This document shows positions 3,724 through 64,000 of a stretch of 64,000 nucleotides of DNA, in pieces (position 1 is the stretch's first letter; each line of letters starts with the position of its first letter). The position numbers were made by a program, and so were the translations under genes. Under the pieces are notes generated by a model. The model was not told where the DNA came from, did not search any database, and was given only the letters and a program-made list of their open reading frames with translations. This DNA is from Piromyces finnis finn (lineage: Eukaryota; Fungi; Neocallimastigomycota), in contig MCFH01000057.1 in assembly GCA_002104945.1 (NCBI GenBank), positions 284,584 through 348,583 of the forward strand, given 5' to 3'.

Positions 3724-5937
3724 TGTAACTAATTGAAATTAATTCTTAAGTTAAACTCGTTTTTATATTTTTTCTTTATATCTATTTTTATCATGATATG
3801 ATAAAAACTTTTATAATTTAAGAGATAATAAATCATTTATTTCTTTTATTCCTTTAAAAAAACAAATTAAGATAAAAAAAAAAGTATTTTATTAATACTA
3901 ATTAACATTGTAAATAATATTTTTGTCTTTTTTTAATAAAAGTATACTAAATCTATTCTGTAATAATTTAAAAATAATATAATATAAATAAATATTTGTA
4001 AAACTTTTAAACAATTACATATATCAAATAAAATACTTCAATTTATATAATAAATATGTATATATTATATTATAACTATTAAACTATTAAAATTATAAAA
4101 TCATTTTTAAACATTAATTAAACATATTCAAAGTTTAAAAAACTTTTTTTTTAATATTAATAATAATTTGTCTTATATTTAAATGCCTTCTTTTAATTAA
4201 TTTTCAAATCAATAGGATTAAAATCTATTATTTTATATTTTATATTTTTATAGCATTTAATATGTTATTAAAAAATTGGTATTTATACATAATATTTTAT
4301 TATTATTTTGTTGTTGTTATTCTTTTTTTCTTTTATGTATTTTATATATTCGTTATTGTTTTTTTTAAAAAAAAAAAAAAAAGAAAGAAAATTGATAATT
4401 GATAAGAATTTGTGGTTCTTATATAAATAAGGATTGGTTTATTATTACAATTATGATAACTTTGTTAATAGTTTACTGCATTTATTTTGATAACCCATTC
4501 CAATGAAAAAAAATAACATGAATTTATTTATTATAACTTTTATACATCAAAATCATTAATAAATACAATAATTTTATTTTATTTTTTTTATAGACTATAT
4601 ATAAGTTTACTTCATCTTTTTTGTTTATTCTATTTTTCTTAAAAAAAAAAAAAAAGAAGAAAGAAAGGGTTATAATAATTATAATAATTAAATGGGTTAA
4701 AGTTTAACTTTAATCCACCTGCTGAAAAAGTCGACTGTTTTTTTTTTTGTTTGTTTGTTTGGAGCTGAGTAACTTTAAATATTAAAATTTTTATAATTCT
4801 AGAGAAATTAAAATTATTAATTAAATTATTTTTTATTGATTTGATATTTGATTATTAATAAAGATAAAAAAAAAAATAAAAAAAGGTTTATCAAAAAAAA
4901 TAATAATGTTAATTCAATAATACCATTTTAAAATCATAAATCTTTAAAAAAAAAAAAGTTAGTAAAATTAAAAAATATATATGTAATTATGTAATATCTA
5001 ACATTAATAAATGGCTACCTTTTTATTGTAACATTAATATTGGATTCATATTCATATACAAATGTATAGCCCAAATAAAAAGGAACAATGATAAATATTG
5101 AGATTGTTAATGTATTATACATATTATACCCATTATATATAGTATATACCTAAATAGTATTCATTCCAAAAGCTCAAACTTTAAATATTTAATTACCTTT
5201 TATTATAAATGGATAAAAATTTTAATAAAAGAAAAAAATAATAATAATAGAGACAATAAAAGATATGTTTATACCTATTAAATATGATAAATATTAGACT
5301 TTAAACTTTTAAAAATATAATTGTTCTTTTATAACAAATAGGCAAAAGCCTTTTATAAATATATTTACGAGTAAATGAATATCATATGGTGTCAGTGTTA
5401 TAAGCAAATGCATCCAATAAACCAAAAAAGTTAATAATTAATAAATTCTTTATCTCTTACTTTTTTATTAAAAAAAAAAAAAAATGCTAAAAGCCTTTTT
5501 TTAGACTTTTAAAAGAAAGGAAAGAAAAATTACAAACATAAATTTACAAAATCAATTCTTTTAAATAATTAAGTTTTTAAAACTCGAAAATTTATTTTAT
5601 TTTTATTTTATTTTTTTAATTATTTAAATATATACAATTACAAATTAGCTAACTCATAAATTTTTATTATCAATTATTATTATTTTATAATTAATGCATT
5701 AAAAATCCTTATACTAGAAAAAAAAATAAATATAACAGAATAGTAAACACAAACACAAACACATAATATATATTAATTTAATTTCAATAAAATACATATC
5801 ATTACTAAAAAAAAAAAATAATTAATTTAACATTATTAAAAAAAAAAAACAATTTTAAAAAGAAAAATACAATTTTAATTTGATAAATAAATAAATTTCA
5901 ATACAATTATTTTTATTCTATCATTTCATTATTATTC

Positions 5938-8900
5938 ATGGAGAACGAAATCTCTACTTTATCAATACCAGAAGATATTAAAAAAGGGACAATGGAATCA
6001 CCAACAAATACGATGAATGTAAATGAAACAAATACACCAATCCTTCAAGTTGAAGGAAACACAAATAGTAATCACCGTCCGGAAATGGATAATTCTGATA
6101 TAACAACAGATGTTACAGAAGAAATAAAAAATGATGATTTAAATAATAGTTATGCCGAAAACGAAAAAGCAGTCAGTACTGGAATCTCAAATACTCTAGA
6201 TGATTCTAAAAATGAAATTAATGAAAATGAAATCAATGAAGATGGAATAAATGATGATACCAATAATGAAGTCAATGAAAATGAAATTAATGAGGATGAA
6301 ATAAACGATGATACCAATAATGAAGTCAATGAAAATGAAATTAATGAAGATGAAATAAATGATGATACCAATAATGAAGTCAATGAAAATGAAATTAATG
6401 AAGATGGAATAAATGATGATACCAATAATGAAGTCAATGAAAATGAAATTAATGAAGATGGAATAAATGATGATTCTAATTATGACGCTGTTGAAGTCGA
6501 TAATAATATTAGCGATGATTCCAATAACAAAGATAATCTCGCCGATGATGATAAAATTAATGAAAATGAAATCAATGAAAATGAAATTAATGAGAATGAA
6601 ATCAATGATGATATTAATAATGAAATCAATGAAGATGGAATAAATGATGATATCAATAATGAAGTCAATGAAAATGAGATTAATGAGGATGAAATCAATG
6701 ATGATATTAATAATGAAATCAATGAAGATGGAATAAATGATGATACCAATAATGAAGTCAATGAAAATGAAATTAATGTGAATGAAATAAACGATGACAT
6801 TAATAATGAAGTCAATGAAAATGAAATTAATAAGGATGAAATAAACGATGACATTAATAATGAAGTCAATGAAAATGAAATTAATGTGAATGAAATAAAC
6901 GATGACATTAATAATGAAGTCAGTGAAAACGAAATTAATGAGGATAAAATAAATGATGATACCAATACCAATAATGAAATCAATGAAGATAGAATAAATG
7001 ATGATATCAATAATGAAGTCAATGAAAATGAGATTAATGAGGATGAAATCAATGAAAATGAAATAAACGATGTTACTAATAATAATGAAATTAATGAAAT
7101 AATGGAAAATGAAGTTAATAATAATATCAATGATTTTAATAATGAACCTGTTGAAAATGAAATTAATAATAATGCCAGCAATGATTCTAATAATGACTTT
7201 GCTAAAATTGTTGATAATACTAACAATAACTTCAACAACGAAATTATTGAAAATGAATTTAAGGAGATTTCAAGCAATAATGATAATATTGTTAATGAAT
7301 TTAAAGAAAACACCAAATCATCAAATAGTGGAATTCCAGTAATAAATGTTGAAGGTATGTCAGACGATGAAAATGATGCTATTTATAGTCCAATAGATAA
7401 TGTTGATACTTCTATGGATAGTCCAGCCATCATGAAAGATACCACTGATCCTGTTTCACCAGTCTCTCCAATTAATACAGATTTACCACAAAATCAGAAT
7501 ACTAATCCAAGTTTAAATTCTGCAACTAGTACTGCAAGTGAGGCCATATCTAATGCATGGAGTTCTGTTTCTAATTATTTATGGTCTTGGTTTGAACAAC
7601 CAGCTGAAAATATACCAGAAAGTATAGAAGAAGAACAATCCCCTACTAGTAATAAAACAAATACCCAATCTGAAACATCTGGTACTAATTATTATACCAG
7701 TTTTTTTGGTTCTTTCTTTAGTCGACCAGCCGCAACAGAAAGTACTACTAATAATACTTCACTTGAGAAGAAGGTCAGTAATAGTAGTCTTTCCTCCTCT
7801 CGACTTAGTTTATTAAGTCAACAAGCTCGTATGAATTCTGTTCAATTTATTGGTCTTGAAGAAAGCGATGAAGATGTCAAGCCAATTATTAATCATGAAT
7901 TAACTGACTATATTCGACCACATTTACCTTTATATCAACGTGAATCACCAAAGTGGGTACTTCGTTATTCCACAACGCAACATGGGATTAGTTTAAATAC
8001 GCTTTATAAAAATGTTGAAAATGCTGGCCCACTTATACTTGCTATTCGCGATACCGAAAATAATGTAAATGATCGTATATACAAGTTACAAACAATAATA
8101 TCATACCTTTTCAATAATAATAAATAGATATATTAATAGATTTTTTTTTTTTTTTTCATACTAATATTTCATTTAAATAGGTATTTGGTGCCTATGTTTC
8201 AGAAAGTTTCCATGTCAGTAAAGGATTCTATGGTACAAGAGAATGGTAAATTTTAAATTATTATGAAAATAATAAGAAGAATATAATTTTTGATATTATT
8301 TATATATATATATAAAAGTACTATTATACATTATCTTACCTTGTTTTATTACCTCCTTCTAATTTTAATAATATAAATCATTATATACATATTCTTTTTA
8401 TTATTATTATTTTTTTTCTTTCATAGTTTCCTATGGAAATACGTTAAAGGGGGATTAAAAATGTACCCAACCTCAGGATATAATGAATACTTTATTCTTT
8501 CTGAATCAGATTATATTGCTATTGGTGGAGGGTAATTATTATTATTTTTTTTTTTTAATATAAATTTAAATGGGCAATTAAGGAAGAAGAAAAAAAAAAA
8601 AAAAAGATTAAAGCTATTTAAATAAAAAAATTAGATAATCTATTCTTTATCATTATTCATGATACAGTTAAATATTAATTTTTTTCTTATTTTATGTATA
8701 TATAATGATATATTATAGAAATGGTAACTATGGTTTATACATTGATGAAGGTAATTTAAACTTTAATTCTTCTCGAATATTTTAAATAACTAAATTTTTT
8801 ACTAAAACTTTTTTTTTTTTTAATAATTAATTCTCTTTTTAGATATACAAAACGGACAATCTTCTGAATGTACAGCCTTCTTTAATGAACCACTCTCCTC

Positions 8901-8952
8901 TTCGGTTCATTTCCAAATTCTTTCTTTAGAAGTTTGGGCATTTGAAATGTAG
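5938..8952 (+). CDS. OXR1: TLDc-domain protein (OXR1/NCOA7 family) with a long Asn/Glu/Asp/Ile-rich N-terminal repeat region
   Basis: Exons about 5938-8064, 8181-8245, 8427-8531, 8721-8750, 8843-8952 with GT-AG borders. Spliced C-terminus reads WVLRYSTTQHGISLNTLY...LAIRDTENNVFGAYVSESFHVSKGFYGTRECFLWK...YIAIGGG...GLYID...FFNEPL...LEVWAFEM*, a typical TLDc domain. Confidence 0.85.
6205..7150 (+). repeat. Coding minisatellite, ~54-nt (18-aa) unit NNEVNENEINEDEINDDT with 15-nt sub-repeats (NENEI)
   Basis: Repeated aataatgaagtcaatgaaaatgaaattaatgaagatggaataaatgatgatacc units, in frame in exon 1 of the TLDc gene. Confidence 0.95.
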
Positions 8953-9497
8953 ATTAGATTTAAATTTTATTTTTCTTTTCATTGTTTTACAATTTCATTT
9001 TTATAATTTTTTATTAGTAGTATTATTTTTTTATCATTTTTTTTATTAACATTTAAATAGGATATATTTATATAATATGTAATTATAAAAATATATCTAT
9101 AGTAAGCATAACTTTTTTTTTCTTTTCAATCAAAATATAAAAAATAGGATAATAATAATTTTAAATCATTTAAAACTATTTATTCCCTAAATTTATTATA
9201 ATATATATATACATTTTTTAATACGTTTATACTCATCTTTTCTTTAAAATTTAAATAAAATAAATATATTCAAATATAAAAATTGCATAATAATAATAAT
9301 AATAATAAATGATGAATAAATAGTATTGATAGCTATTAATAATTACACTATATTCTCATTTATTAATTGTTTATTCCATTAAATAAAATAAAAAAAAAAA
9401 AAAAAAAAAAAAAAGAGCCTATTATTATTGCTATATTTATATTTAATATAATATAAAAAAAAAACTAAATTTTTACTATTTATAATTTTATTATAAT

Positions 9498-28018: not shown

Positions 28019-28426
28019 TTTTTCATTTCAATATCATTATATAATGGAATGATATTGAAATATCTTTGTTATTTTATTCTTTCTATTATTTACTTTTAGT
28101 TATCTTTGTTATTTTATTCCTTCTACTATTTACTTTTAGTTATTTGTTGTATTTTTAATGCAACTTTTGTTTTTAAGGCATTAAATGAATCTTTCTAAAG
28201 CCTGCAATGTGTGAATACACTTACAGAAATTTTAAATTTTTGGTCTTATCAACAGCAGAAAACTAAAATAAAAATAAAATATAAATAGATAAATAGATAG
28301 ATAGACAATACTATAATTTATTAAAGAATATTTCAAATAATAAAAATAAAATAATTAAAAATAAAAATTAAGAAATTGTTCTCAATTTCATTAGGCCTAT
28401 TAGTATATATCAAGTATAAAAAAAAT

Positions 28427-28498
28427 TGCCAACTGACGGAATTGAACCACCGACCTTCGCTTTACAAGAGCGACGCTCTACCACTAAGCCAAGCTGGC
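28427..28498 (-). tRNA. tRNA-Thr(UGU)
   Basis: 72-nt cloverleaf on the minus strand, identical to 54919-54990; anticodon arm TCGCT CT TGT AA AGCGA. Confidence 0.95.
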
Positions 28499-28504
28499 AA
28501 TAAA

Positions 28505-28597
28505 TGCTCATGGCGGGGGTCGAACCCGCGATCTTCGCGTTGCATAAGAGGATCACCCTTATAAGCACGACGCCTTAAACCTCTAGGCTACACGAGC
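28505..28597 (-). tRNA. tRNA-Ile(UAU) with 19-nt intron
   Basis: 93 nt, identical to 54820-54912; acceptor stem GCTCGTG/CATGAGC; anticodon CT TAT A followed by intron AGGGTGATCCTCTTATGCA. Confidence 0.92.
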
Positions 28598-31500
28598 ATC
28601 TTGTTGATTTCAATGTTAAGGAATGAACATAAATAGTTGAATTAGCTAGAATTTTAGGAATTAATGTGAAGATATTAACTGGATTTAAAACAAATTCAGA
28701 TAATATCTATAATTAATTAAACATAATAATTATAATTAAATAATTTCAATAATTATTTTAAAACACTTTTAAAAGTCACCTTTTAAATTTTGATTCAGTG
28801 AAAGGGTTATGATTTCAAAAATTTAATATCAATATACTATAACCCTTAACCAAAAATAAGCAAGTACGAAATAAGGTGTAACTCGCCAAAAACGATCGCT
28901 ACGGTGATGAAACTAGGTTTATTGGAAAGCTTAGGAAGAAAGCTACAATTTGGTACAATCGCGGTCCTTCTAACTGATCATTTAAGGAAGTTATGATCAT
29001 TTAAAGATTTTATTAGGTAAATTAAAATCAATATGATATCAAGTATGGATCATAAATATTTCTTATGACTTGATGAAATTAAAAATATATCAATAGGAAT
29101 TTTAGTTATATTAATTTAATTAATGATAACGATTGTTACTAAAAATAGAACTAGACCCATTTAGGTGTAACAGTTAATACCTATAAATTAAATAATCTTA
29201 ATTATTATAAAATAGGTTAACGGCAAGTTTTATTAGAAATAATTTTGAAAATAATAATTATTTAGTTATAACAAATATGTTATGGTAATATCAATTAATA
29301 ATGATGAATTATTAATTGAATAGTTTTTATAATTACTAATTAGGATCAACTGTTTAAATGATTAATCATATGTTTATTTTATTTTATGTCATGACAAACA
29401 AACAAACAAACAAACAAACAATCTTATTACTTATTTAATTATATTACTAATATATTACATGTAATACTTTATTCTTATTAATATCAATTTAATAATCTGA
29501 ACAAAGAATATAAAAGAGAATGAATTGAATTCGATTTTAATTCTTTGTAAAGATTATAGTTATAATCTTAATTATATAGTTACTTATAATATCATTTATA
29601 TTATTATTAAATAAATAAAAAAATTTATAAAAAGTTATTTTAAAGTAAATATAAATTTTTCATTTTTCATTTGGGAGTTTAAGGTGTTATTTTATAATTA
29701 AATTTAATTTCTTAAAAAACATTTTTACTATATAATTAATAACATTCTGACCTGGCCGCATAACCAAACCCAAAAACTTAACAATTAACCTTCAACTATT
29801 TATATTCCTTACTAGTGTTTAACTCTATTTTTAAAATATAAAAATTATAATATATAATTTTTATACATTTTTCTAGTAATTATTAATATTTTTATTATAT
29901 AGTTATATTATTTGTATATAGTTATTTAAGACCTTTATTATTAGTATTAGTATAATTACTTATAATATTTTATACTTATAAATTTTACAAAATTTTACTA
30001 TTAAAATAATTATAGGTATTTTATTATTATTTAAGGTTTATTTTATTAATTAACCTTATTGTATAATATTTTATAATTTGAAATTATGACATAGAATTTA
30101 ATTATAATTTTTACTAAAAGAGGCAACTGTTACACACAAAACAGAAGATACCTCGACAGAAAAATTATTATTTATGTCTAAAAAAGGGCATAATTAATTG
30201 AATAATATAATTTTATTATATGTCATAATTAAATATATAATATATGATATGCAAAAATGTTACACATATCATAAATTAAAATTTTATTAATTATAAATTA
30301 AAAAATTTTTCTATTCAAATATTAAGAGATTATTCATAATATATATTAAGGATTTAATTAATATATGTTACAGTGAATGATCCATATATTATGAATGAAA
30401 TCAATTTAAATCCTTAGCTATCCAAAACCATTAAATTTCAAATAATGGATAGTTGGAAAAAGTACGAGGATTTTTGAGAAAAAATTTTAAAAATTGAAAA
30501 ATCAAAAATAAATTAAATGAATAAAAATTAAAATTAAATAAATTTTTATTTTTATAACTATTCAAGTGTTTTGTGATATCTTATTTGAACCGTAGCATCA
30601 AAATTGGTTCCGATAATCTTTAATTTGATATCATAATTGGAACAACTTCAAGGGTTATCTCTTAATTATTAATTAACATCCATAATTATTCATATATTAT
30701 AACAACTAATATTATTTGCAAATTTTAAAAAACTGTAACATTAATCATTTTATAATAGAAAAGATTACAAAAATATTAATATCATATGATAGGAACTTTA
30801 CAGCTTGAAAAATTAAATCAAACATATTAAAACAATTATAAATTTATTTAATAAATAATTTTACTTGAGTTTGAAACTAGATTATCAGTTTTTTATTTCG
30901 GACAAAAAGAGAGTATATTTTTATGGACCAAATATTAAGTAAAATAAATGCAATATTAAAACTACAAAAATTAAATCAAAAAAGCACTTTCTCTAACATT
31001 CCAAAATAATTAATAATTAGTTTTCATTTTTAATAATAAATAATATATTTATCAGTGAGAATTTGTCCTCAATCTTTTTCAGAAGTCTAACAAATAATAT
31101 GCGTACATCATATAAATATATTATTTTATTATTAAAAATAAAAAACGTAATACTTAAATTTAAATTATAAATTTAATATCTTTCTTTATTTTTATATATA
31201 TTTTAAAACTAAATTGTTTTTAATTGTATATTAATAAATACTATTAAAATTTTATTTTCTGTTTATTTTCTCTTTAGTTTTATTCCTTCTTGGCAACATA
31301 TTGACTACCACGAACAAAGAGAAATATTTCGTAATAGCTTCGATAGTGCCTTTCTCCAAATTTTCAGAAATAATATATTTATTATTTTATATTTTATAAT
31401 AAATTATTATTTCTTCTTTTTTATTACTTTCTTTTTCCTATGTTTTAAAATACTTTGAAACTAGATAAAAAAACTAGAGAGAATAAATAACATGGAAATA

Positions 31501-51716: not shown

Positions 51717-54257
51717 ATGGTTAACTTTACTATTGATGAAGTTCACGATCTTATGAAAAAGAAGCGTAACATTCGTAACATGAGTGTTATTGCTCACGTC
51801 GATCACGGTAAGTCCACCATTTCCGATTCCTTAGTTTCTAAGGCCGGTATTATTGCTTCTGAAAAGGCTGGTGACCAACGTTATATGGATACCCGTCCAG
51901 ATGAACAAATGCGTGGTATTACTATTAAGTCTACTGCCATTTCTATGTTCTTTGAAATGGAAGAAGAAAACCTTCACCTTGTCAAGGAAGAAACCGATGG
52001 TAAGGAATTCTTAATTAACCTTATCGATTCCCCAGGACACGTCGATTTCTCTTCTGAAGTTACTGCTGCCCTTCGTGTCACTGATGGTGCTCTCGTTGTC
52101 GTCGATTGTATTGAAGGTGTCTCTGTCCAAACTGAAACTGTTTTACGTCAAGCCCTTACTGAATACATTAAGCCAGTCGTTATCGTTAACAAGGTCGACC
52201 GTGCTCTTCTTGAATTACAACAAACTAAGGAAGATCTTTACCAATCCTTATGTAGAACTATTGAAAACCTTAACATTACCATTTCTACTTACCAATCTAA
52301 GGCTCTTGGTGATGTCCAAATTGTTCCAACTGAAGGTACTATTGCTTTCGGTTCCGGTCTTCAAGCCTGGGCTTTCACTCTTCTTGATATCTCTCGTCTT
52401 TACGCCAAGAAGTTCGGTATTCCAGTCGACAAGATGATGAAGAGACTTTGGGGTGACCACTACTTCAACCACCGTACTAAGAAGTGGACTACCAAGTCTG
52501 ATGATGGTAAGGGTGGACAACTCGAACGTGCTTTCTGTATGTTCGCTCTTGACCCAATCTACCGTCTCTTCGATACCATCATGAAGGGTGACAAGAAGCA
52601 AATCATGACTCTTGTTGACAAGCTCGGTATTCAACTTAAGTCTGATGAAGCTGGTCTTGAAGGTAAGCACCTCTTAAAGACTGTTATGAGAAAATTCCTT
52701 CCAGCCGCCGATGCTTTATTGGAAATGATGGTCATTCACTTACCATCTCCAGTCGTCGCTCAAAAGTACAGAGTTGACAACTTATACGAAGGTCCAGGTG
52801 ATGATGCTTGTGCCACCGCTATCCGTAACTGTGATCCAAACGGTCCACTTATGGTTTACGTCTCTAAGATGGTTCCAACTTCTGATAAGGGTCGTTTCTA
52901 CGCCTTCGGTCGTGTCTTCTCTGGTACCATCCGTGCCGGTCTTAAGGTCCGTATCCAAGGTCCAAACTACGTTCCAGGTAAGAAGGATGATCTCTTCGTT
53001 AAGAACGTTCAACGTACTGTTCTTATGATGGGTCGTACTGTCGAACCAATTGAAGATGTTCCATGTGGTAACCTTGTCGGTCTTGTCGGTCTTGACCAAT
53101 ACCTTCTCAAGTCTGGTACTCTTTCTACTGATGAAAACGCCTACAACCTTAGAGTCATGAAGTTCTCTGTCTCTCCAGTCGTCCAAGTTTCCGTTCGTCC
53201 AAAGAACCCATCTGACTTACCAAAGCTTGTCGAAGGTCTTAAGCGTCTTTCTAAGTCTGATCCATGTGTCCAAGTTACTACCAACGATGCTGGTGAACAC
53301 ATTGTTGCTGGTGCTGGTGAACTTCACTTAGAAATTTGTCTTAAGGATCTTGAAGAAGATCACGCTCAAATTCCAATTATTAAGATGGACCCAATCGTTA
53401 CCTACCGTGAAACCGTTACCACTGAATCCGACCGTGTCTGTCTTTCTAAGTCTCCAAACAAGCACAACCGTATCTTCATGAAGGCTCTTCCACTTGCTGA
53501 AGAACTCAGTAACGATATTGAAGCCGCCACTGAAGGTAAGTGCTCCCCACGTGATGATGTTAAGGTTCGTGCTCGTTACCTTGCTGAAACTTACGAATGG
53601 GATGTTATGGAAGCTCGTAAGATCTGGGCCTTCGCTCCAAACTCCAGCGGTCCAAACGTTCTTGTCGATTGTACCAAGGCTGTCCAATACCTTAATGAAA
53701 TTAAGGATTCTTGTATTGCCGGTTTCGAATGGGCCTCTAAGGAAGGTGTTCTCTGTGATGAAAACATGCGTGGTGTCCGTTTCAACATTTTAGATGTTAC
53801 CCTTCACGCTGATTCCATTCACCGTGGTGGTGGTCAAATTATCCCAACCCTCCGTCGTGTCTGTTACGCCTCCCAACTTACTGCTAAGCCAACTCTTCAA
53901 GAACCAATCTTCCTTTGTGAAATTACTTGTCCAGCTTCCGCTATGGGTGGTGTCTACACTGTCCTTAACCAACGTCGTGGTCGTGTCACTGATGATGAAG
54001 TTCGTCCAGGTACTGATATGCACGTCATTAAGGGTTACCTCCCAATTGCTGAATCCTTCGGTTTCACTGAATCCCTTCGTGCTGAAACTGGTGGTCAAGC
54101 CTTCCCTAACTGTCTCTTCGATCACTGGGAAGTCATGGAAGGTGAAATCGATTCTCCAAACGCCAACAAGTTACAAGAAATCGTTCGCTCCATCCGTAAG
54201 AGAAAGGGTCTTGCTGAAGAAGTTCCATCTCTTGATAAGTTCTTCGATAAGCTTTAA
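51717..54257 (+). CDS. EFT2: Translation elongation factor 2 (eEF2), intronless CDS with strong codon bias
   Basis: 846 aa. [60 protein letters not shown], and the diphthamide loop [17 protein letters not shown]. Confidence 0.97.
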
Positions 54258-54819: not shown

Positions 54820-54912
54820 GCTCGTGTAGCCTAGAGGTTTAAGGCGTCGTGCTTATAAGGGTGATCCTCTTATGCAACGCGAAGATCGCGGGTTCGACCC
54901 CCGCCATGAGCA
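54820..54912 (+). tRNA. tRNA-Ile(UAU) with 19-nt intron
   Basis: Cloverleaf GCTCGTG TA GCCT...AGGC G TCGTG CT TAT A[agggtgatcctcttatgca]A CGCGA AGATC GCGGG TTCGACC CCCGC CATGAGC A; 74 nt when spliced. Confidence 0.92.
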
Positions 54913-54918
54913 TTCATT

Positions 54919-54990
54919 GCCAGCTTGGCTTAGTGGTAGAGCGTCGCTCTTGTAAAGCGAAGGTCGGTGGTTCAATTCCGTCAGTTGGCA
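54919..54990 (+). tRNA. tRNA-Thr(UGU)
   Basis: 72-nt cloverleaf GCCAGCT...AGTTGGC A; anticodon TGT; 6 nt downstream of tRNA-Ile and followed by a T-rich terminator. Confidence 0.95.
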
Positions 54991-55048
54991 ATTATTTTAT
55001 TTTTATTTTATTATTTTTTTTTTTTTTTGTTTAAAAGGAATATCCCTA

Positions 55049-58000
55049 CCCTCTTACCCCCCTCTTGGAAACGTGCCTTCATTTATTTAATAAATGTAGT
55101 TTCTCAAGGGGGTCTACTCATGCTCATGGTACTGAGAGAGTAGGAAGAATTAAATCCAAGCATTGCGCAATGGATGCTTGGTTAGTCTTTAAGGGAAAAT
55201 TATTAGGACTAAGCTCATGGTACTGAGCGATTAAAAAACATTTATCCATCGAATTTAAGTATTTGATGAATAAGTTGAATGTTTGATATTCAGGTAAGTT
55301 TGTATAGTATTTAATTAGAAGAGTAATACATTTTGTTGCTGTATTTTTTCTTTTATTCATGTATTCATGTAGTACTACTCTTCTCTTGTAAGAATCCAAT
55401 GTAGTCAACTTTAGCATTTGCATTGTATTTTTATATTCATGTAGCTATTGTTGTATTGTTTCTTGTAAGAGACTGATTCACTCTACATCATGTAAAAATA
55501 CTATTCACAAGCTTTCTGGTGTCGACATTCTTGATTCAAATTTTTTACCAATTTAAATATTTAATGAAAAGTAAGTCAAACAAGTTTAGTGTCAAAAAGC
55601 GAATCGAATTTACTAACAACAAACCAAAACTAGAATTTTTAAAGAAAATTTACAACTAGAATTCAAAAAAAGAAACTTTAAACAAAGCATCGTAACAATT
55701 TTTGTACTATCCAGTACTTTTAAGAAGAGAGAGAGAGACAGATTTTTTTTCCATATACGTTATATTTATAATTTTTATTAGTATTTATTTTATATTCAAT
55801 ATTTTTAATTAGAATTTATTATCATGTCAGTCCTTTATATTAAAGTCAAGAATTATATCAGACGTGGTACCCGGTCTTATGGTATCCCCTTAGATGATAT
55901 TCGCTCCTTCTTTATCCGTGGTATTCGATCATGGTCAGTAAATATGCTATGGGAAAAACTCGAGGTTATTCTAGAAGATAAATTTAATTCAGTTATTAGT
56001 GTTAAATATTTTCAGACTTTCAATGATCACTTTTTCTTAGTCAAGGTTCATGGTTCATCGAAAGATTGTATTAAAATCTTACACATGTTAAAGAAGAAAC
56101 TTTCAGTTACCTCAATTTCCTTTTCAGCTCGTAGTAGAAGGAATCACAAATACACTTTTTCCACTCTCAAACGTAAAATTTTAGTTTCTAATAAACATCA
56201 ACATTCTATTCAACAATCATTTCAACAATCAGTTCAACAATCTCATCAACAATCCGATCTTCAACTAGATCTTCAACAAGATCTTCAACAAGTTTCCAAT
56301 CATGAAAATATTCCAGATCTACAGCAAACACAATTTCAATCTCAACATTCAACAATTAATTCTAATAGCTCTATCAACTCTGATAACAGTTCAATAGTTG
56401 ATAGTTCTTCAGTTTCACAGCCATCTAGTAATAGTTCTACTTATTCCTCTGATGCATCATCCATTAATAACGATGACTTTAATAATAATAATAATAGCAA
56501 CGATTCTTCCTCATCCAACAAGCCTGATAACTTTTCTTTTTGTCTTAGTTGGAACACCAATGGGTGGAATCACGAAAAGAGAGATAGTATTAGCTATTTC
56601 ACAGCTATTTTCAAACCATTATTTTTATGTTTCCAAGAAACTGGTAATGGTTCTGGATCGAATACAGATTATCCTTGTCGTGTTACTTTGCGAAACTATA
56701 GACACTTTTTCAAGAAAGCTGACGAATCAGTTCCGGGAATGAGAGGTTTATATTTAGGTTTTCACAATTCATGTCAAGCCTCACTTGAAAACTTCTCTGG
56801 AAAGTATATTATTTCTATTTATACTTTTAGTCTCTGGAATAGATTCAAATGCTCGATTGGTAATGTTTATATGCCTCATAGTCATCACAACATCTATGTT
56901 GATCATGCAAAGTTAGAAGTTCGCTTGTGGTTACAAACTCATTCATCCCATCCATCGATTCTTGTTGGTGATTTTAATATGTCTAAAGTAAAATTATCCA
57001 ACTGGTTATCAACTAATGGATTAGGAGATTGGGAAATTCTTCCGCTTAGAGGGTCTACTATCTCTTGGACTCGAGGTGATCAATCTTCCGACATTGACCA
57101 TGCTCTTATCAATTCGAAGATGAAAGATCTTATTCACTCAGGATCATTTATAAATAATTTTTATCCTGTATCAGACCATAAGCCACTTCTTATTAATGGT
57201 AAAATTATTCCTATGGAAGATTTTTCTAATGACTTTAATGTTCCTAAGAAAATTCTGAAATGGAATAGATTAAAATGTATTGAGGAAAAGGAATCTATTC
57301 TCAGTCATAATAAATTCCAAATACTTTCAGCTAAATCCAACGATCCTAATGTTTCTACAGATGAACTTTCCAAAGAGTTTACTTCAACTGCTTTTTCAAT
57401 TGCAGACGAGCTCAGTATTACTTCAGCAAATAATGTTATAAAGTCTTCATTTCATATTTCACAACAAATTTTTAATCTTCAAAAAATCAAAATGAAGTTG
57501 TATAAGAGATTTAAAAAAGAAAGAATTTATGATATAGATGAATTTATTAAAAGAATTAAAATCTACCGTAAACTCATTGATTACATCCACAAAAGATGTA
57601 ATGAATTTAGGAAGCAAGAATATCTTCATTGGATTAAAACAGGATGTGAGTATATGAAGAGTCATAATCCTAAGAAGGCCTGGAAATGGATCAAGAAAAC
57701 TGCAAAAATTGGAAAAGATTCTTTCTTTATTGCTCAACCAATTAAAAATAAAAATGGAGAATTAGTTGTTGCTACGGAAGAACAACTAGATGTGTGGCAT
57801 GATCATTTCGAAAAGCTTGCATCAGATCCAAGTGGTGTAAGTCTTGATTTAGAGCATTGGTATGAAGAACCAATGAATAAACGTTTTTCACTTCCTATGC
57901 TTGATGAATGGGATATCAACCAAGATATTAGTATTGATGAAGTCAAGTCAGCTATCCTCACTACTCCAAATTATAAAGCATCAGGTCCGGATGGTATTCC

Positions 58001-60582
58001 AATTGAATTTTACAAAGCATTAGTTCCATCAAGTAATGATTCTAATAATGCTACAGATAATAATTCTTCTGGTAATACTACTTCAGATAATGATGCTCAT
58101 GGTTTAAATTTTATTCTTAAATTATTCAACCGTATTTGGGATGGAGATTTCCCCAACTCATGGAATGAATCCAGTATTGTTTCTATTCCTAAGAAGGGAG
58201 ATTTGACAGATTGTGATAACTATCGAGGTATATCACTTATCAATAATGGTATTAAGTTGATTTCCAAAATTGTCACCACTAGAATCTCAGAATATGGTTT
58301 AAAGAATAATTTCATTAGACCTGAACAATTTGGTTTTCGAAAAAAGGAAGAAAGTATTAGTCTTTTCATTTCAATCCAAGAAATATGCCGTAGACGTCAA
58401 TTAGATAATAAAGAGACATATTTGGCCTTTTTAGATCTCAGGAAAGCATACGATTCAGTCCCAATCGGTAATATTCTCCATAAATTAGATTGTTTAGGAA
58501 TCCGAGGTAAGAGTTTACAATTCATCAAAAATTTATATTTAACATCTAAGGCTAATGTCAAATTAGATGGACAATTCTCGAAATCTTTTGATGTGAAGAA
58601 AGGAGTCCGTCAAGGTTGCCCTCTTTCTCCTATTCTCTTTAATCTCTTTATTAATGATATATTTAGAGAGTGCGAAGATCTAGGAGTCAGTTTAGGTGAC
58701 ACTCGATGCTGTGGTGGACTTTTTGCAGATGATATAGTTATTTGTGCTCCAACAAGAGGATGCTTAAAAAAGATGCTTAGAAGAGTTAATGAATGGGCAT
58801 TGTATAATGAAATGGAATTTGGTATCCAGAAATGTTCAACGATGGTGATTCGTCCTGAATCAATAGAAAATCAGAACAAGAGAGATCCAACATTTTACTT
58901 AGCAGGACAACCCATTCCAACTACTGATTGTTATACTTATCTTGGTGTTCCATTTGATAAGAATTTGTCCCTTAAACCAGTAATTAAAGCTCTTAATAAC
59001 AAGGTTTTGAAAGGGCTTTTCTCAGTCAGTAAATTCTTAAGAAATCCTAATATTCCTATTCCTTTCAAAAAACTAGTACTTAACTCACAAGTGATTAGCA
59101 GAGTTTCATACTTTGCACCATTACTTGGATCCAACAAAGCTAGGTCTAGGATTGCTCAGAAGCATGTTAACAAAGGAATACGATGGGTTGCCGGAGTTCA
59201 TAAAGCTGTATCGTTTATATCTTTATACTCTATTTCAAAAGATTTGAATATTCCTCCATTGTCAGCCAAATGTGCGTTAGCTCAGGTTAGATGTTTTAAC
59301 AAATGGAAAAACTCAAATTGTATTATCTCACACCTTGTCAATTACATTCCTAAATTTAGAAAATACACGTGGTGCAAATCAAGTAGGACACTTGATAAAA
59401 AACTAAAGAAACATGGAGATGTTAAAGCAGTTAAAAACTTTTATTGGAAAGATCTCAAAGGGAATTCAATCAAAGCGCAATATTATGATGATAATAAATT
59501 TAGTGAAACTAAAGATTTTATTAAATTATGTTATGAGTACCCAGAGTTTGCCTATGGCTTCTACTGGCTATTGAAAGCAAGAAGCGGATACAAGTTGGAT
59601 GCTAGAGTTGCCAAAGCTGCTAAATTTGTTGATCCAGTTTGTCCTAACTACTGTCCATGTTGCAAGTGTGGAGATCAAAGTATTAAACATTGGTTATTAG
59701 ATTGTCCAACATTTAGAGATATCCGTATTAAACATTATGATTCCATAGTCCAGCTATTAAATTTTTTCAGTCAACGTAATTCCAATAGTCCTATCAATAA
59801 TAATGAAATTGATAATATCAGTAGAGATAGTAATAACATTAATAGTAATAGTAACAATAGTAATAGTAACAATAGTAATAGTAACAATAGTAATAGTAAC
59901 AATAGTAATAATAACAATAATAGAAATAATAATATTAGTAATGATAGCAATAGTGAAGATAATAATTCTAATTTAGATAGTAATTTAGTTAATGATAGTA
60001 ATAGTTCTAATAATCCGGTGAATATTAATGTGTATGATTATTCTAGTGTGTGCAGTAAAATATTTAAATTCCTTCTTGGGGGAAGAAGTTTTAACAATAT
60101 TAATTACAATTCAAGGGAATGGAAAGAACTTTGTAAGCGTCAGATTCAATCTGGTACTAATGAAGGAGCACCATTCTTGACGGTAACCGCGGAACTTCTA
60201 ACCAAAATCATGCCTTTTGCTATTGGCCAGCAATGGTCAATGTTCAAAAGGTTTGAAGCAACATCCAAGAGCGTCAATGCTGAAGAAACAGTAAGACAGG
60301 CCAGGAGGGCCAGCGCAACCAATGGAGATCATAATTTTGTTCCATGACAAAATTTTGATCTTTGGCTCGGTGTCCCATTGGAAGTCAAATACAATTATTA
60401 TACTTTAGTATGATAGTGGCTTTCTTACTTTAATTAAAATTACTAGAATACATTATACCCAATTTTTATTCATTTGTGTTTATTTAAACATATTTTTTTT
60501 ATTTTTATTTTATTTTAATTTTTATATTTCATGTATTATAATTTTAATTAAATTAATAATAAAGTTTAAAATATTTGATGCC

Positions 60583-60639
<57 letters not shown>
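55049..60639 (+). mobile_element. Full-length non-LTR retrotransposon (LINE), copy 1: one 5' monomer, ~640-nt unique 5' UTR, single ORF, 3' UTR and 54-nt poly(A)
   Basis: ORF 55824-60347; AATAAA at 60558-60563; A-run at 60586-60639; CCCTCTTACCC at both 55049-55059 and 60640-60650 (candidate TSD). Confidence 0.95.
55824..60347 (+). CDS. LINE polyprotein, 1507 aa: RRM-like N-terminus, Q/S/N linker, APE endonuclease, reverse transcriptase, CCHC zinc finger
   Basis: APE motifs: SWNTNG, LCFQET, GDFN, TISWTR, SDIDHAL, SDHKPL. RT motifs: KASGPDGIP, YRGISL, QFGFR, FLDLRKAYDSV, GVRQGCPLSPILFNLFI, FADD, YTYLG. Zinc finger: CPCCKCGDQSIKHWLLDC. Confidence 0.96.
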   Translation: MSVLYIKVKNYIRRGTRSYGIPLDDIRSFFIRGIRSWSVNMLWEKLEVILEDKFNSVISVKYFQTFNDHFFLVKVHGSSKDCIKILHMLKKKLSVTSISFSARSRRNHKYTFSTLKRKILVSNKHQHSIQQSFQQSVQQSHQQSDLQLDLQQDLQQVSNHENIPDLQQTQFQSQHSTINSNSSINSDNSSIVDSSSVSQPSSNSSTYSSDASSINNDDFNNNNNSNDSSSSNKPDNFSFCLSWNTNGWNHEKRDSISYFTAIFKPLFLCFQETGNGSGSNTDYPCRVTLRNYRHFFKKADESVPGMRGLYLGFHNSCQASLENFSGKYIISIYTFSLWNRFKCSIGNVYMPHSHHNIYVDHAKLEVRLWLQTHSSHPSILVGDFNMSKVKLSNWLSTNGLGDWEILPLRGSTISWTRGDQSSDIDHALINSKMKDLIHSGSFINNFYPVSDHKPLLINGKIIPMEDFSNDFNVPKKILKWNRLKCIEEKESILSHNKFQILSAKSNDPNVSTDELSKEFTSTAFSIADELSITSANNVIKSSFHISQQIFNLQKIKMKLYKRFKKERIYDIDEFIKRIKIYRKLIDYIHKRCNEFRKQEYLHWIKTGCEYMKSHNPKKAWKWIKKTAKIGKDSFFIAQPIKNKNGELVVATEEQLDVWHDHFEKLASDPSGVSLDLEHWYEEPMNKRFSLPMLDEWDINQDISIDEVKSAILTTPNYKASGPDGIPIEFYKALVPSSNDSNNATDNNSSGNTTSDNDAHGLNFILKLFNRIWDGDFPNSWNESSIVSIPKKGDLTDCDNYRGISLINNGIKLISKIVTTRISEYGLKNNFIRPEQFGFRKKEESISLFISIQEICRRRQLDNKETYLAFLDLRKAYDSVPIGNILHKLDCLGIRGKSLQFIKNLYLTSKANVKLDGQFSKSFDVKKGVRQGCPLSPILFNLFINDIFRECEDLGVSLGDTRCCGGLFADDIVICAPTRGCLKKMLRRVNEWALYNEMEFGIQKCSTMVIRPESIENQNKRDPTFYLAGQPIPTTDCYTYLGVPFDKNLSLKPVIKALNNKVLKGLFSVSKFLRNPNIPIPFKKLVLNSQVISRVSYFAPLLGSNKARSRIAQKHVNKGIRWVAGVHKAVSFISLYSISKDLNIPPLSAKCALAQVRCFNKWKNSNCIISHLVNYIPKFRKYTWCKSSRTLDKKLKKHGDVKAVKNFYWKDLKGNSIKAQYYDDNKFSETKDFIKLCYEYPEFAYGFYWLLKARSGYKLDARVAKAAKFVDPVCPNYCPCCKCGDQSIKHWLLDCPTFRDIRIKHYDSIVQLLNFFSQRNSNSPINNNEIDNISRDSNNINSNSNNSNSNNSNSNNSNSNNSNNNNNRNNNISNDSNSEDNNSNLDSNLVNDSNSSNNPVNINVYDYSSVCSKIFKFLLGGRSFNNINYNSREWKELCKRQIQSGTNEGAPFLTVTAELLTKIMPFAIGQQWSMFKRFEATSKSVNAEETVRQARRASATNGDHNFVP

Positions 60640-60641
<2 letters not shown>

Positions 60642-60661
60642 CTCTTACCCTCTTGGGAAAT

Positions 60662-61334
60662 CCCTCTTGGGAACGTGCCTTCATTTATTTAATAAATGTA
60701 GTTTCTCAAGGGGGTCTACTCATGCTCATGGTACTGAGAGAGTAGAAAGAATTAAATCCAAGTATTGCGCAATGGATGCTTGGTGCCCTCTTAGGAACGT
60801 GCCTTCATTTATTTAATAATGGAGTTTATCAAGGGGGTCTACTCATGCTCATGGTACTGAGAGAGTAGAAAGAGCCCTCTTGGGAACGTGCCTTCATTTA
60901 TTTAATAAATGTAGTTTCTCAAGGGGGTCTACTCATGCTCATGGTACTGAGAGAGTAGAAAGAATTAAATCCAAGTATTGCGCAATGGATGCTTGGTGCC
61001 CTCTTAGGAATGTGCCTTCATTTATTTAATAAATGTAATTTCTCAAGGGGGTCTACTCATGCTCATGGTACTGAGAGAGTAGAAAGAGCCCTCTTGGGAA
61101 CGTGCCTTCATTTATTTAATAAATGTAGTTTCTCAAGGGGGTCTACTCATGCTCATGGTACTGAGAGAGTAGAAAGAATTAAATCCAAGTATTGCGCAAT
61201 GGATGCTTGGTGCCCTCTTAGGAATGTGCCTTCATTTATTTAATAAATGTAATTTCTCAAGGGGGTCTACTCATGCTCATGGTACTGAGAGAGTAGAAAG
61301 AATTAAATCCAAGCATTGCGCAATGGATGCTTGG
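60662..61334 (+). repeat. Six-unit tandem array of LINE 5' monomers (124, 89, 124, 90, 124, ~122 bp)
   Basis: Units start at 60662, 60786, 60875, 60999, 61089, 61213 (CCCTCTTRGGAA). Long units carry an extra ~34-bp module, ATTAAATCCAAGYATTGCGCAATGGATGCTTGGTG. Confidence 0.95.
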
Positions 61335-61980
61335 TTAGTCTTCAAGGGAAAATTATTAGGACTAAGCTCATGGTACTGAGCGATTAAAAAACATTTTATT
61401 CATCAAATTTAAGTATTTGATGAATAAGTGAATGTTTGATTTTTCAGGTAAGTTTGTATAGTATTTAATTAGAAGAGTAATACATTTTGTTGCTGTATTT
61501 TTTCTTTTATTCATGTATTCATGTAGTACTACTCTTCTCTTGTAAGAATCCAATGTAGTCAACTTTAGCATTTGCATTGTACTTTTATATTCATGTAGCT
61601 ATTGTTGTATTGTTTCTTGTAAGAGACTGATTCACTCTACATCATGTAAAAATACTATTCACAAGCTTTCTGGTGTCGACATTCTTGATTCAAATTTTTT
61701 ACCAATTTAAATATTTAATGAAAAGTAAAGTCAAACAAGTTTAGTGTCAAAAAGCGAATCGAATTTACTAACAACAAACCAAAACTAGAATTTTTAAAGA
61801 AAATTTACAACTAGAATTCAAAAAAAAAAGAAACTTTAAACAAAGCATCGTAACAATTTTTGTACTATCCAGTACTTTTAAGAAGAGAGAGAGAGACAGA
61901 TTTTTTTCCATATACGTTATATTTGTAATTTTTATTAGTATTTATTTTATATTCAATATTTTTAATTAGAATTAATTATC

Positions 61981-64000
61981 ATGTCAGTCCTTTATATTAA
62001 AGATAAGAATTATATCAGACGTGGTACCCGGTCTTATGGTATCCCCTTAGATGATATTCGCTCCTTCTTTATCCGTGGTATTCGATCATGGTCAGTAAAT
62101 ATGCTATGGGAAAAACTCGAGGTTATTCTAGAAGATAAATTTAATTCAGTTATTAGTGTTAAATATTTTCAAACTTTCAATGATCACTTTTTCTTAGTCA
62201 AGGTTCATGGTTCATCAAAAGATTGTATTAAAATCTTACACATGTTAAAGAAGAAACTTTCAGTTACCTCAATTTCCTTTTCAGCTCGTAGTAGAAGGAA
62301 TCACAAATACACTTTTTCCACTCTCAAACGTAAAATTTTAGTTTCTAATAAATATCAACATTCTATTCAACAATCATTTCAACAATCAGTTCAACAATCA
62401 GTTCAACAATCTCATCAACAATCCGATCTTCAACAAGATCTTCAACAGGATCTTCAACAAGTTTCCCATCATGAAAATATTCCAGATCTACAGCAAACAC
62501 AATTTCAATCTCAACATTCAACAATTAATTCTAATAGTTCTATCAACTCTGATAACAGTTCAATAGTTGATAGTTCTTCAGTTTCACAGCCATCTAGTAA
62601 TAGTTCTACTTATTCCTCTGATGCATCATCCATTAATAACGATGACTTTAATAATAATAATAATAGCAACGATTCTTCCTCATACAACAAGCCTGATAAC
62701 TTTTCTTTTTGTCTTAGTTGGAACACCAATGGGTGGAATCATGAAAAGAGAGATAGTATTAGCTATTTCACAGCTATTTTCAAACCATTATTCTTATGTT
62801 TCCAAGAAACTGGTAATGGTTCTAGATTGAATACAGATTATCCTTGTCGTGTTACTTTGCGAAACTATAGACACTTTTTCAAGAAAGCTGACGAATCAGT
62901 TCCGGGAATGAGAGGTTTATATTTAGGTTTTCACAATTCGTGTCAAGCCTCACTTGAAAACTTCTCTGGAAAGTATATTATTTCTATTTATACTTTTAGT
63001 CTCTGGAATAGATTCAAATGCTCGATTGGAAATGTTTATATGCCTCATAGTCATCACAACATCTATGTTGATCATGCAAAGTTAGAAGTTCGCTTGTGGT
63101 TACAAACTCATTCATCCCATCCATCGATTCTTGTTGGTGATTTTAATATGTCTAAAGTAAAATTATCCAACTGGTTATCAACTAATGGATTAGGAGATTG
63201 GGAAATTCTTCCGCTTAGAGGGTCTACTATCTCTTGGACTCGAGGTGATCAATCTTCCGACATTGACCATGCTCTTATCAATTCGAAGATGAAAGATCTT
63301 ATTCACTCAGGATCATTTATAAATAATTTTTATCCTGTATCAGACCATAAGCCACTTCTTATTAATGGTAAAATTATTCCTATGGATGATTTTTCTAATG
63401 ACTTTAATGTTCCTAAGAAAATTCTGAAATGGAATAGATTAAAATGTATTGAGGAAAAGGAATCTATTCTCAGTCATAATAAATTCCAAATACTTTCAGC
63501 AAAATCCAGCGATCCTAATGTTTCTACAGATGAACTTTCCAAAGAGTTTACTTCAACTGCTTTTTCAATTGCAGACGAGCTCAGTATTACTTCAGCAAAT
63601 AATGTTATAAAGTCTTCATTTCATATTTCACAACAAATTTTTAATCTTCAAAAAATCAAAATGAAGTTGTATAAGAGATTTAAAAAAGAAAGAATTTATG
63701 ATATAGATGAATTTATTAAAAGAATTAAAATCTACCGTAAACTCATTGATTACATCCACAAAAGATGTAATGAATTTAGGAAGCAAGAATATCTTCATTG
63801 GATTAAAACAGGATGTGAGTATATGAAGAGTCATAATCCTAAGAAGGCCTGGAAATGGATCAAGAAAACTGCAAAAATTGGAAAAGATTCCTTCTTTATT
63901 GCTCAACCAATTAAAAATAAAAATGGAGAATTAGTTGTTGCTACGGAAGAACAACTAGATGTGTGGCATGATCATTTCGAAAAGCTTGCATCAGATCCAA
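61981..64000 (+). CDS. LINE copy 2 polyprotein, N-terminal ~673 codons, apparently open to the window edge
   Basis: Same frame and sequence as copy 1 with few substitutions and one 12-bp in-frame insertion. No in-frame stop was seen at the differences checked. It is absent from the ORF track, probably because it has no stop inside the window. Confidence 0.85.
   Translation, partial: MSVLYIKDKNYIRRGTRSYGIPLDDIRSFFIRGIRSWSVNMLWEKLEVILEDKFNSVISVKYFQTFNDHFFLVKVHGSSKDCIKILHMLKKKLSVTSISFSARSRRNHKYTFSTLKRKILVSNKYQHSIQQSFQQSVQQSVQQSHQQSDLQQDLQQDLQQVSHHENIPDLQQTQFQSQHSTINSNSSINSDNSSIVDSSSVSQPSSNSSTYSSDASSINNDDFNNNNNSNDSSSYNKPDNFSFCLSWNTNGWNHEKRDSISYFTAIFKPLFLCFQETGNGSRLNTDYPCRVTLRNYRHFFKKADESVPGMRGLYLGFHNSCQASLENFSGKYIISIYTFSLWNRFKCSIGNVYMPHSHHNIYVDHAKLEVRLWLQTHSSHPSILVGDFNMSKVKLSNWLSTNGLGDWEILPLRGSTISWTRGDQSSDIDHALINSKMKDLIHSGSFINNFYPVSDHKPLLINGKIIPMDDFSNDFNVPKKILKWNRLKCIEEKESILSHNKFQILSAKSSDPNVSTDELSKEFTSTAFSIADELSITSANNVIKSSFHISQQIFNLQKIKMKLYKRFKKERIYDIDEFIKRIKIYRKLIDYIHKRCNEFRKQEYLHWIKTGCEYMKSHNPKKAWKWIKKTAKIGKDSFFIAQPIKNKNGELVVATEEQLDVWHDHFEKLASDP

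Follow-up and report, generated by a model that had tools for sequence, protein, structure and literature searches.

Co-oriented self-nesting and a minor tRNA-3' hot spot in a probable generalist L1-like LINE of the anaerobic fungus Piromyces finnis

The DNA studied here, referred to as the window, is a stretch of 64,000 nucleotides from Piromyces finnis (Neocallimastigomycota; GenBank assembly GCA_002104945.1, contig MCFH01000057.1, positions 284,584 to 348,583), in which two long interspersed nuclear elements (LINEs) of one family, copy 1 and copy 2, stand head to tail behind a pair of tRNA genes. The window is the final 64 kb of a 348,583-bp contig (C186), which stops at the window end, and the genome comprises 56.46 Mb in 232 contigs with approximately 17% G+C. 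We consider it probable that the family is a generalist L1-like LINE which combines strong co-oriented self-nesting with a minor hot spot just past the 3' ends of tRNA genes, resembling that of the Dictyostelium element TRE3. The hot spot is genuine, with a TRE3-like geometry at seven tRNA genes, and accounts for only a few per cent of the insertions.

In the window, the LINE-derived sequence begins 53-69 bp after the end of a tRNA-Thr gene (54991) and runs in the orientation of the tRNA. All features of the two copies lie on the + strand. A stutter of the 5' motif, CCCTA (55044-55048), which judging from its sequence and from analogous nested insertions originally belonged to copy 2, is followed by the left copy of an 11-bp duplication, CCCTCTTACCC (55049-55059), and then by the canonical first base of the element at 55060. 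This 5' end (CCCTCTTGG...) was placed by comparison with five other full-length copies. The T-rich host spacer (54992-55043, +) contains T15 at 55014-55028, and an earlier note on this DNA was right in locating the element just past the tRNA-Thr and its T-rich terminator. Copy 1 is full length (5580 bp, 55060-60639), as judged from its near-identity to copies on contigs C201 and C1 and from Tandem Repeats Finder (TRF). Its 5' untranslated region (UTR), which extends to 55823, starts with a single 123-bp monomer (55060-55182; TRF), and its intact single open reading frame (ORF) encodes 1507 amino acids (aa; 55824-60347). The 3' end, ...GATGCCGTT, leads into a poly(A) of 54 A (60586-60639; TRF). 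As the earlier note had it, copy 2 then follows with no host DNA in between: the right copy of CCCTCTTACCC (60640-60650) is all that stands there, and it forms part of the 5' stutters of copy 2 (60640-60661). Copy 2 (60640-64000, delimited by sequence, repeat and identity comparison) is incomplete at the contig end. It carries five extra 5' units (123/89/123/89/123 bp, 60662-61211; TRF) ahead of its own first monomer and body; the body, from 61213 on, contains an ORF (61981-64000) that stays open for 673 codons to the contig end. The two copies are 98.1% identical over 2790 nt.

Insertion of the element into older copies of itself is a frequent event. In the sample from contig C1, same-family nested copies with exact duplications were found at loci L005, L028, L031, L033 (three events), L036, L038 and L039. 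The duplicated sequence of the older host copy was 9-17 bp long and exact, plus one case of approximately 31 bp, and one nested insertion, at L041, showed a 7-nt target deletion instead of a duplication. Every nested copy lay in the orientation of its host copy. Among 100 listed 3' ends, 44 had a neighbour within 10 kb, and all 30 of 30 neighbouring pairs were on one strand; many clusters as well as many solitary copies are scattered along the 2.6 Mb of C1. Self-targeting, which the earlier note had mentioned as an alternative, is strongly supported by the nested co-oriented copies and by these same-strand neighbours. Long-range orientation domains, reflecting replication direction, were also considered and rejected, the 20 independent C1 loci forming 10 runs against 10.9 expected.

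Several further observations concern the stacks. At L039 (C1:1532048-1542047), at approximately 6280-9116 in element orientation, a 942-bp unit with an identical truncation point is repeated three times in tandem. Each unit consists of an 11-bp duplication (TGCTGAAGAAA), a 5'-truncated LINE (element positions 4598-5555) and poly(A), and the array is a satellite-like amplification of a nested insertion. In the 3' flanks of L029 and L039/L040, copies of another repeat (…TTGGTGGAAYTTTAG…ACATTTGAATRAAC…) have received two independent LINE stacks at positions approximately 30 nt apart, and a similar short motif also precedes the LINE at the tRNA locus on C152. The pattern A16GCATTT gave 53 matches in the genome against 3 for the reversed control, far over chance, and some other poly(A)-tailed repeat may regularly have GCATTT next to it.

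The pair at 55044-64000 is best explained as a nested insertion, in which copy 1 went into copy 2 at the latter's very 5' end and 11 bp were duplicated. This is also what the earlier note had concluded from a short motif flanking copy 1 on both sides. Entry of copy 1 into the first bases of copy 2 accounts at once for the 11-bp repeat and for the start of copy 1 at the canonical first base, and the reading of CCCTCTTACCC as a duplication is the more economical because at least ten other nested copies carry exact duplications. For the original insertion, that of copy 2, the target duplication is predicted at 55030-55043, its length being taken from the 11-14 bp seen elsewhere. However, three points speak against this reading of the pair. 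The 11-mer reuses the element's own first bases, so the target duplication is not unique, as the earlier note had itself cautioned, and a chance stutter is possible; the duplication belonging to copy 2 would lie beyond the contig end; and the tandem is as given by the assembly.

Two other origins of the stack were weighed. It might be due to self-nesting only, the first copy having landed by the tRNA by chance and the second having been drawn to the 5' promoter region of the older copy. The frequency and co-orientation of self-nesting agree with this, and so do two nestings away from tRNA genes (L038 and L005), which also lie within the first 253 nt of the host copy. We nevertheless regard it as rather unlikely, since it leaves seven independent first landings behind tRNA genes unexplained and since uniform nesting would seldom place a landing within 11 nt of the end of a 5.6-kb host. 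Repeated landings by the tRNA are plausible, and at this locus they are inseparable from attraction to the 5' end of the older copy. The second origin is a single event, in which the reverse transcriptase switched templates, from one LINE RNA's 5' end to another's poly(A) tail, and left no duplication between the copies, or else an assembly artefact. Some junctions of the C1 sample, such as that at L027, have no duplication and may stem from template jumping; moreover, the 5' stutters suggest slippage at RNA 5' ends, and the contig breaks within copy 2. On the other hand, CCCTCTTACCC flanks copy 1 exactly, copy 1 starts at the canonical first base, the analogous junctions with exact duplications of the interrupted older copy number at least ten (9-17 bp, one of approximately 31 bp), and the 1.9% difference between the two copies implies at least different source RNAs. 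A single event or an artefact therefore appears unlikely.

The link between the family and tRNA genes was tested genome-wide by short exact patterns, a tRNA B-box followed by the LINE 5' monomer 15-215 nt downstream. This pattern gave 8 matches at 7 loci, and a looser B-box pattern added one locus, on C184. Once one tRNA-like repeat had been removed, 7 tRNA genes remained, on C13 (176.6 kb), C152 (296.4 kb), C170 (246.0 kb), C184 (370.5 kb), C186 (the window), C212 (168.0 kb) and C223 (121.8 kb), as compared to 0.43 expected from 741 B-boxes and 323 monomers (Poisson P approximately 3e-7). All seven LINE starts are co-oriented with the tRNA and lie approximately 25-95 bp past its end, that is, within a 70-bp range. 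The control geometries behaved differently: the same order with a gap of 215-415 nt gave no new locus, the opposite orientation none, the LINE 3' end upstream of a tRNA one match and the head-to-head arrangement upstream none, so that the four jointly produced 1 match where approximately 2-3 were expected. Infernal confirms the tRNAs at C170 and C223. The majority of the copies lie elsewhere and the genome is rich in transposable elements, and with at least 700 copies and approximately 500 tRNA genes some adjacency could be pure coincidence; as an explanation of an excess of this size, with one orientation and one narrow range, coincidence is very unlikely. With regard to the share of insertions, the seven loci correspond to approximately 3% of the roughly 230 loci with a full-length 5' end and to approximately 1.4% of the tRNA genes. 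The comparison of 5' ends with tRNA genes proposed in the earlier note, made here by pattern counts, yields a clear excess, with most copies lying elsewhere.

A number of points weigh against the hot spot. Four of the seven tRNAs (C13, C152, C184 and C212) are known only by a B-box, an acceptor-like 3' end and a T-run, and the statistics come from short exact patterns rather than from a full annotation of tRNAs and repeats. The excess counts full-length 5' ends, so that 5'-truncated copies adjoining tRNA genes fall outside it; and the duplication k-mers predicted after the poly(A) were not found for C184, C223 and C152. These missing duplications could reflect complex arrays, old 3' ends, contig breaks or a different joining mechanism. 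The tRNA-anchored loci other than the window are known from 80-nt pattern matches. Truncated copies near a tRNA, with a gap of at most 500 nt, gave 4 matches against approximately 1.5-2.3 expected, 2 of them at anchored loci that were already known.

T-tract targeting was rejected as a cause of the association: T13 followed by the 5' monomer 9-24 nt later occurred at 3 loci, where approximately 1.8 were expected on the basis of 0.5 T-runs (of at least 13) per kb per strand. Thr-type tRNAs (B-box GGTTCAATTCC) are found at C170, C186 and C223, that is, at 3 of the 7 anchored loci as against approximately 9% of the listed B-boxes (binomial P approximately 0.02). As in the window, a second unit, a short one, lies no more than approximately 160 bp from the tRNA at C152 and C223. 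Units of very small size, with the LINE 3' end and tail within 100-300 nt after the 5' monomer, were seen at C223:121730-121971, C152:296256-296490 and C35:106780-107101; each is a very small nested insertion, or else they represent a non-autonomous derivative with an internal deletion. At C179:261013-261130 and at L045 (upstream of 5530, element orientation), a repeated tRNA-like head, which has the B-box GGTTCGACCCC and is negative in ARAGORN, is fused to part of the LINE 5' UTR (element position approximately 225) and to the LINE 3' end.

The family as a whole is large. Its 3'-terminal 24-mer has at least 712 matches genome-wide with at most 2 mismatches (0 for the reversed-pattern control), a 19-mer of the 5' monomer occurs 323 times at approximately 230 loci, and by a rough estimate the family makes up approximately 3% of the genome. 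Over approximately 5565 nt, copy 1 is matched at 99.9-100% identity by copies on C201 and C1. The number of 3' ends and the near-identical copies suggest that the family is young and probably active. Sampled copies end in poly(A), are truncated at the 5' side to varying extents and have target-site duplications; such tails and truncation, together with duplications of 11-14 bp, are the marks that target-primed reverse transcription usually leaves. Exact target duplications of 11-14 bp flank nine solitary copies, all in ordinary AT-rich DNA except one in the ORF of another LINE family, and the copies that are 99.9-100% identical to copy 1 likewise lie in ordinary AT-rich DNA with clean duplications. 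An L1-like TTTT/AA nick-site signature was not seen among 14 mapped sites. At L037 (C1:1475883-1484583), a co-oriented 368-bp LINE 3' fragment (6860-7227) is bounded by a 13-bp duplication in its flanks, and its host is the Cys/His region in the ORF of a second, related LINE family.

No tRNA gene was present at approximately 25 other loci (approximately 200 kb), comprising 5 other full-length copies and 20 further C1 loci with approximately 35 copies. Because of these loci, the ordinary duplication sites and the empty second tRNA pair of the window, the family is not a dedicated tRNA targeter. Of the tRNA-3'-targeted family put forward in the earlier note, the excess at a fixed position and orientation holds, whereas targeting by the family at large does not. 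It is extremely unlikely that the element is the functional equivalent of TRE3, dedicated to tRNA 3' flanks: seven co-oriented loci approximately 25-95 bp downstream of tRNA genes, and two successive landings within approximately 160 bp of the tRNA at three loci (the window, C152 and C223), would suit such an element, but the loci devoid of a tRNA gene include copies 99.9-100% identical to copy 1, just approximately 3% of the 5'-end loci are at tRNA genes, none of 18 Infernal-scored tRNA genes has an exact LINE 3' end within 7 kb downstream (on contigs fully covered by the exact-match listing), no LINE stands behind the paralogous tRNA pair of the window (28426-28598), and TRE3 copies are described as always being at tRNA genes (TRE3-A 60/67; PMC5006619).

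A generalist with two biases would account for these results as follows. The element would transpose via target-primed reverse transcription at loosely defined sites, producing duplications of 11-14 bp, and most copies would end up in AT-rich DNA. The first bias would be frequent landing in older copies of its own, in the same orientation, giving rise to head-to-tail stacks; the second would be occasional landing just past tRNA genes, in the orientation of the tRNA. The locus in the window would display both: copy 2 presumably landed first behind the tRNA pair, and copy 1 would then have gone in at copy 2's first bases, with duplication of CCCTCTTACCC. The Pol III complex, or the open chromatin adjoining it, may weakly guide the element and so cause the tRNA hot spot. 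The strict co-orientation seen with own copies, with the ORF of another LINE and with tRNA genes may point to a connection with transcription; as regards LINE in LINE, the co-orientation might also result from inverted pairs being unstable and getting lost. As a tentative extension, both biases might have one cause, namely preferential co-directional integration into transcribed DNA, which would yield facultative TRE3-like landing behind tRNA genes in a fungus; we consider this possible rather than likely. The transcribed targets would then be the element's own copies, the ORF of the other LINE (L037) and the zone of Pol III read-through past tRNA genes, and the route might be a weak contact with Pol III/TFIIIC or the use of 3' ends exposed at replication stalls by tRNA genes.

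The encoded protein is that of an L1-like element. The ORF of copy 1 begins with a region of approximately 240 aa, upstream of the endonuclease domain, that gave no family match in the domain search. It is followed by an APE-type endonuclease (aa 241-452, 56544-57179; Pfam PF03372, E 2.8e-6, 27.7 bits against a cut-off of 24.5) and by the reverse transcriptase (aa 788-1043, 58185-58952; Pfam PF00078, E 1.2e-35). A C-terminal Cys/His (CCHC-like) motif at 59643-59717 is seen in the translation as C-x-C-x7-H-x4-C and corresponds to a weak zf-RVT match (E 0.002, under the Pfam cut-off). The domain search of the 1507-aa ORF detected neither RNase H nor a restriction-like endonuclease, and a separate ORF1 is absent, there being only one sense-strand ORF of at least 100 aa before the stop of the main ORF. 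The closest solved structure is human L1 ORF2p (8e-33), compared to 2.5e-18 for R2; L1 and R2 are the only LINEs among the solved structures. Gut-fungal and rumen data, among them Orpinomyces, contain relatives with 54-70% identity. The 5' monomers are arranged in tandem in varying number, from 1 to at least 6 units of 123 or 89 bp, and the 123-bp monomers presumably act as promoter. Judged by its sequence, the element is an autonomous poly(A) LINE of L1-like type, young and present in very many copies.

The tRNA pair in front of the LINEs consists of an intron-bearing tRNA (54820-54912, +; ARAGORN; Rfam RF00005, 55 bits) and, 5 nt past it, the tRNA-Thr(TGT) (54918-54991, +; ARAGORN; Rfam, 67.9 bits). 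The first of the two is read as tRNA-Ile(UAU) from its anticodon loop, CT-TAT-AA, which was identified by eye in the sequence. The window holds a second dimeric Ile/Thr unit at 28426-28598 (-) with the same 5-nt spacing and an intron-bearing first tRNA, and the upstream flanks of both pairs have a short ...TCAACAA motif in common. The arrangement suggests that the two tRNAs are transcribed together. Upstream of the pair at 54820, and ending approximately 560 bp before it, is an intronless gene for elongation factor 2 (EF-2) of 846 aa (51717-54257, +). Its G+C content is approximately 45%, compared to the background of approximately 17%, and its protein falls into a cluster with Neocallimastix proteins at an identity of at least 90%, which marks the host as an anaerobic gut fungus.

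That retrotransposons land downstream of tRNA genes has been described for dictyostelid amoebae, in TRE3 and Skipper-2. TRE3 inserts 40-150 bp downstream of a tRNA gene and in its orientation, and insertion downstream of tRNA genes is stated to be found only in dictyostelids (PMC5911963). In these hosts TRE3 is essentially always at tRNA genes, and 61% of the tRNA genes carry a TRE (PMC5006619). Both TRE3 (TRE3-A to -D) and the Piromyces element are poly(A) LINEs with an APE endonuclease, a reverse transcriptase and a zinc-finger-like motif (a putative one in the Piromyces element), both form pile-ups at one tRNA gene, and their tRNA-linked copies share the orientation and a position tens of bp downstream. 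However, nearly all TRE3 copies lie approximately 14-300 bp downstream of tRNA genes, as opposed to 7 of the approximately 230 5'-end loci here, at approximately 1.4% of tRNA genes; TRE3 has two ORFs, with ORF2 expressed via a -1 frameshift, in contrast to the single 1507-aa ORF of the Piromyces LINE; and TRE3 resides in an amoebozoan and the present element in a fungus, the two being likened here by geometry and domains. In the literature available to our search, no paper dealt with LINEs or tRNA-linked retrotransposons of anaerobic fungi.

With L1-type LINEs the element shares an APE domain N-terminal to the reverse transcriptase, poly(A), frequent 5' truncation and duplications of approximately 11-17 bp. 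Mouse L1 has a monomeric 5' UTR, and tandem 5' monomers occur in varying number in both. Unlike L1, the Piromyces element has a fused 240-aa N-terminal region in place of a separate ORF1, and its 14 mapped sites bear no TTTT/AA-like nick signature. Clusters of elements nested in each other are also formed by the Zepp LINEs (PMC3446292) of Chlorella and Coccomyxa. Zepp, however, has approximately one cluster per chromosome, probably centromeric or telomeric, whereas C1 alone has many clusters and solitary copies of the present family. McGurk and Barbash (2018; PMC5932611) describe, mainly for Drosophila elements of strong site preference, tandem dimers of transposable elements that arise from double insertion and seed satellites. 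In a similar way, head-to-tail dimers are formed here by repeated insertion at one site, and a 942-bp unit has been amplified threefold on C1.

For annotation purposes, the locus in the window is an ordinary pair of young LINE copies. The near-absolute co-orientation of self-nesting shows how LINE arrays, and subsequently satellite-like repeats, are built in a genome of 17% G+C, and it also explains why the present assembly breaks inside such arrays. If the hot spot is as proposed, a fungal LINE with only a small share of its insertions at the TRE3 spot and in the TRE3 direction would represent an independent origin of this habit and would offer a rare chance to study a partial rather than a fixed targeting preference. 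A facultative tRNA-3' habit of this kind may possibly be an evolutionary intermediate on the way to strict tRNA targeting.

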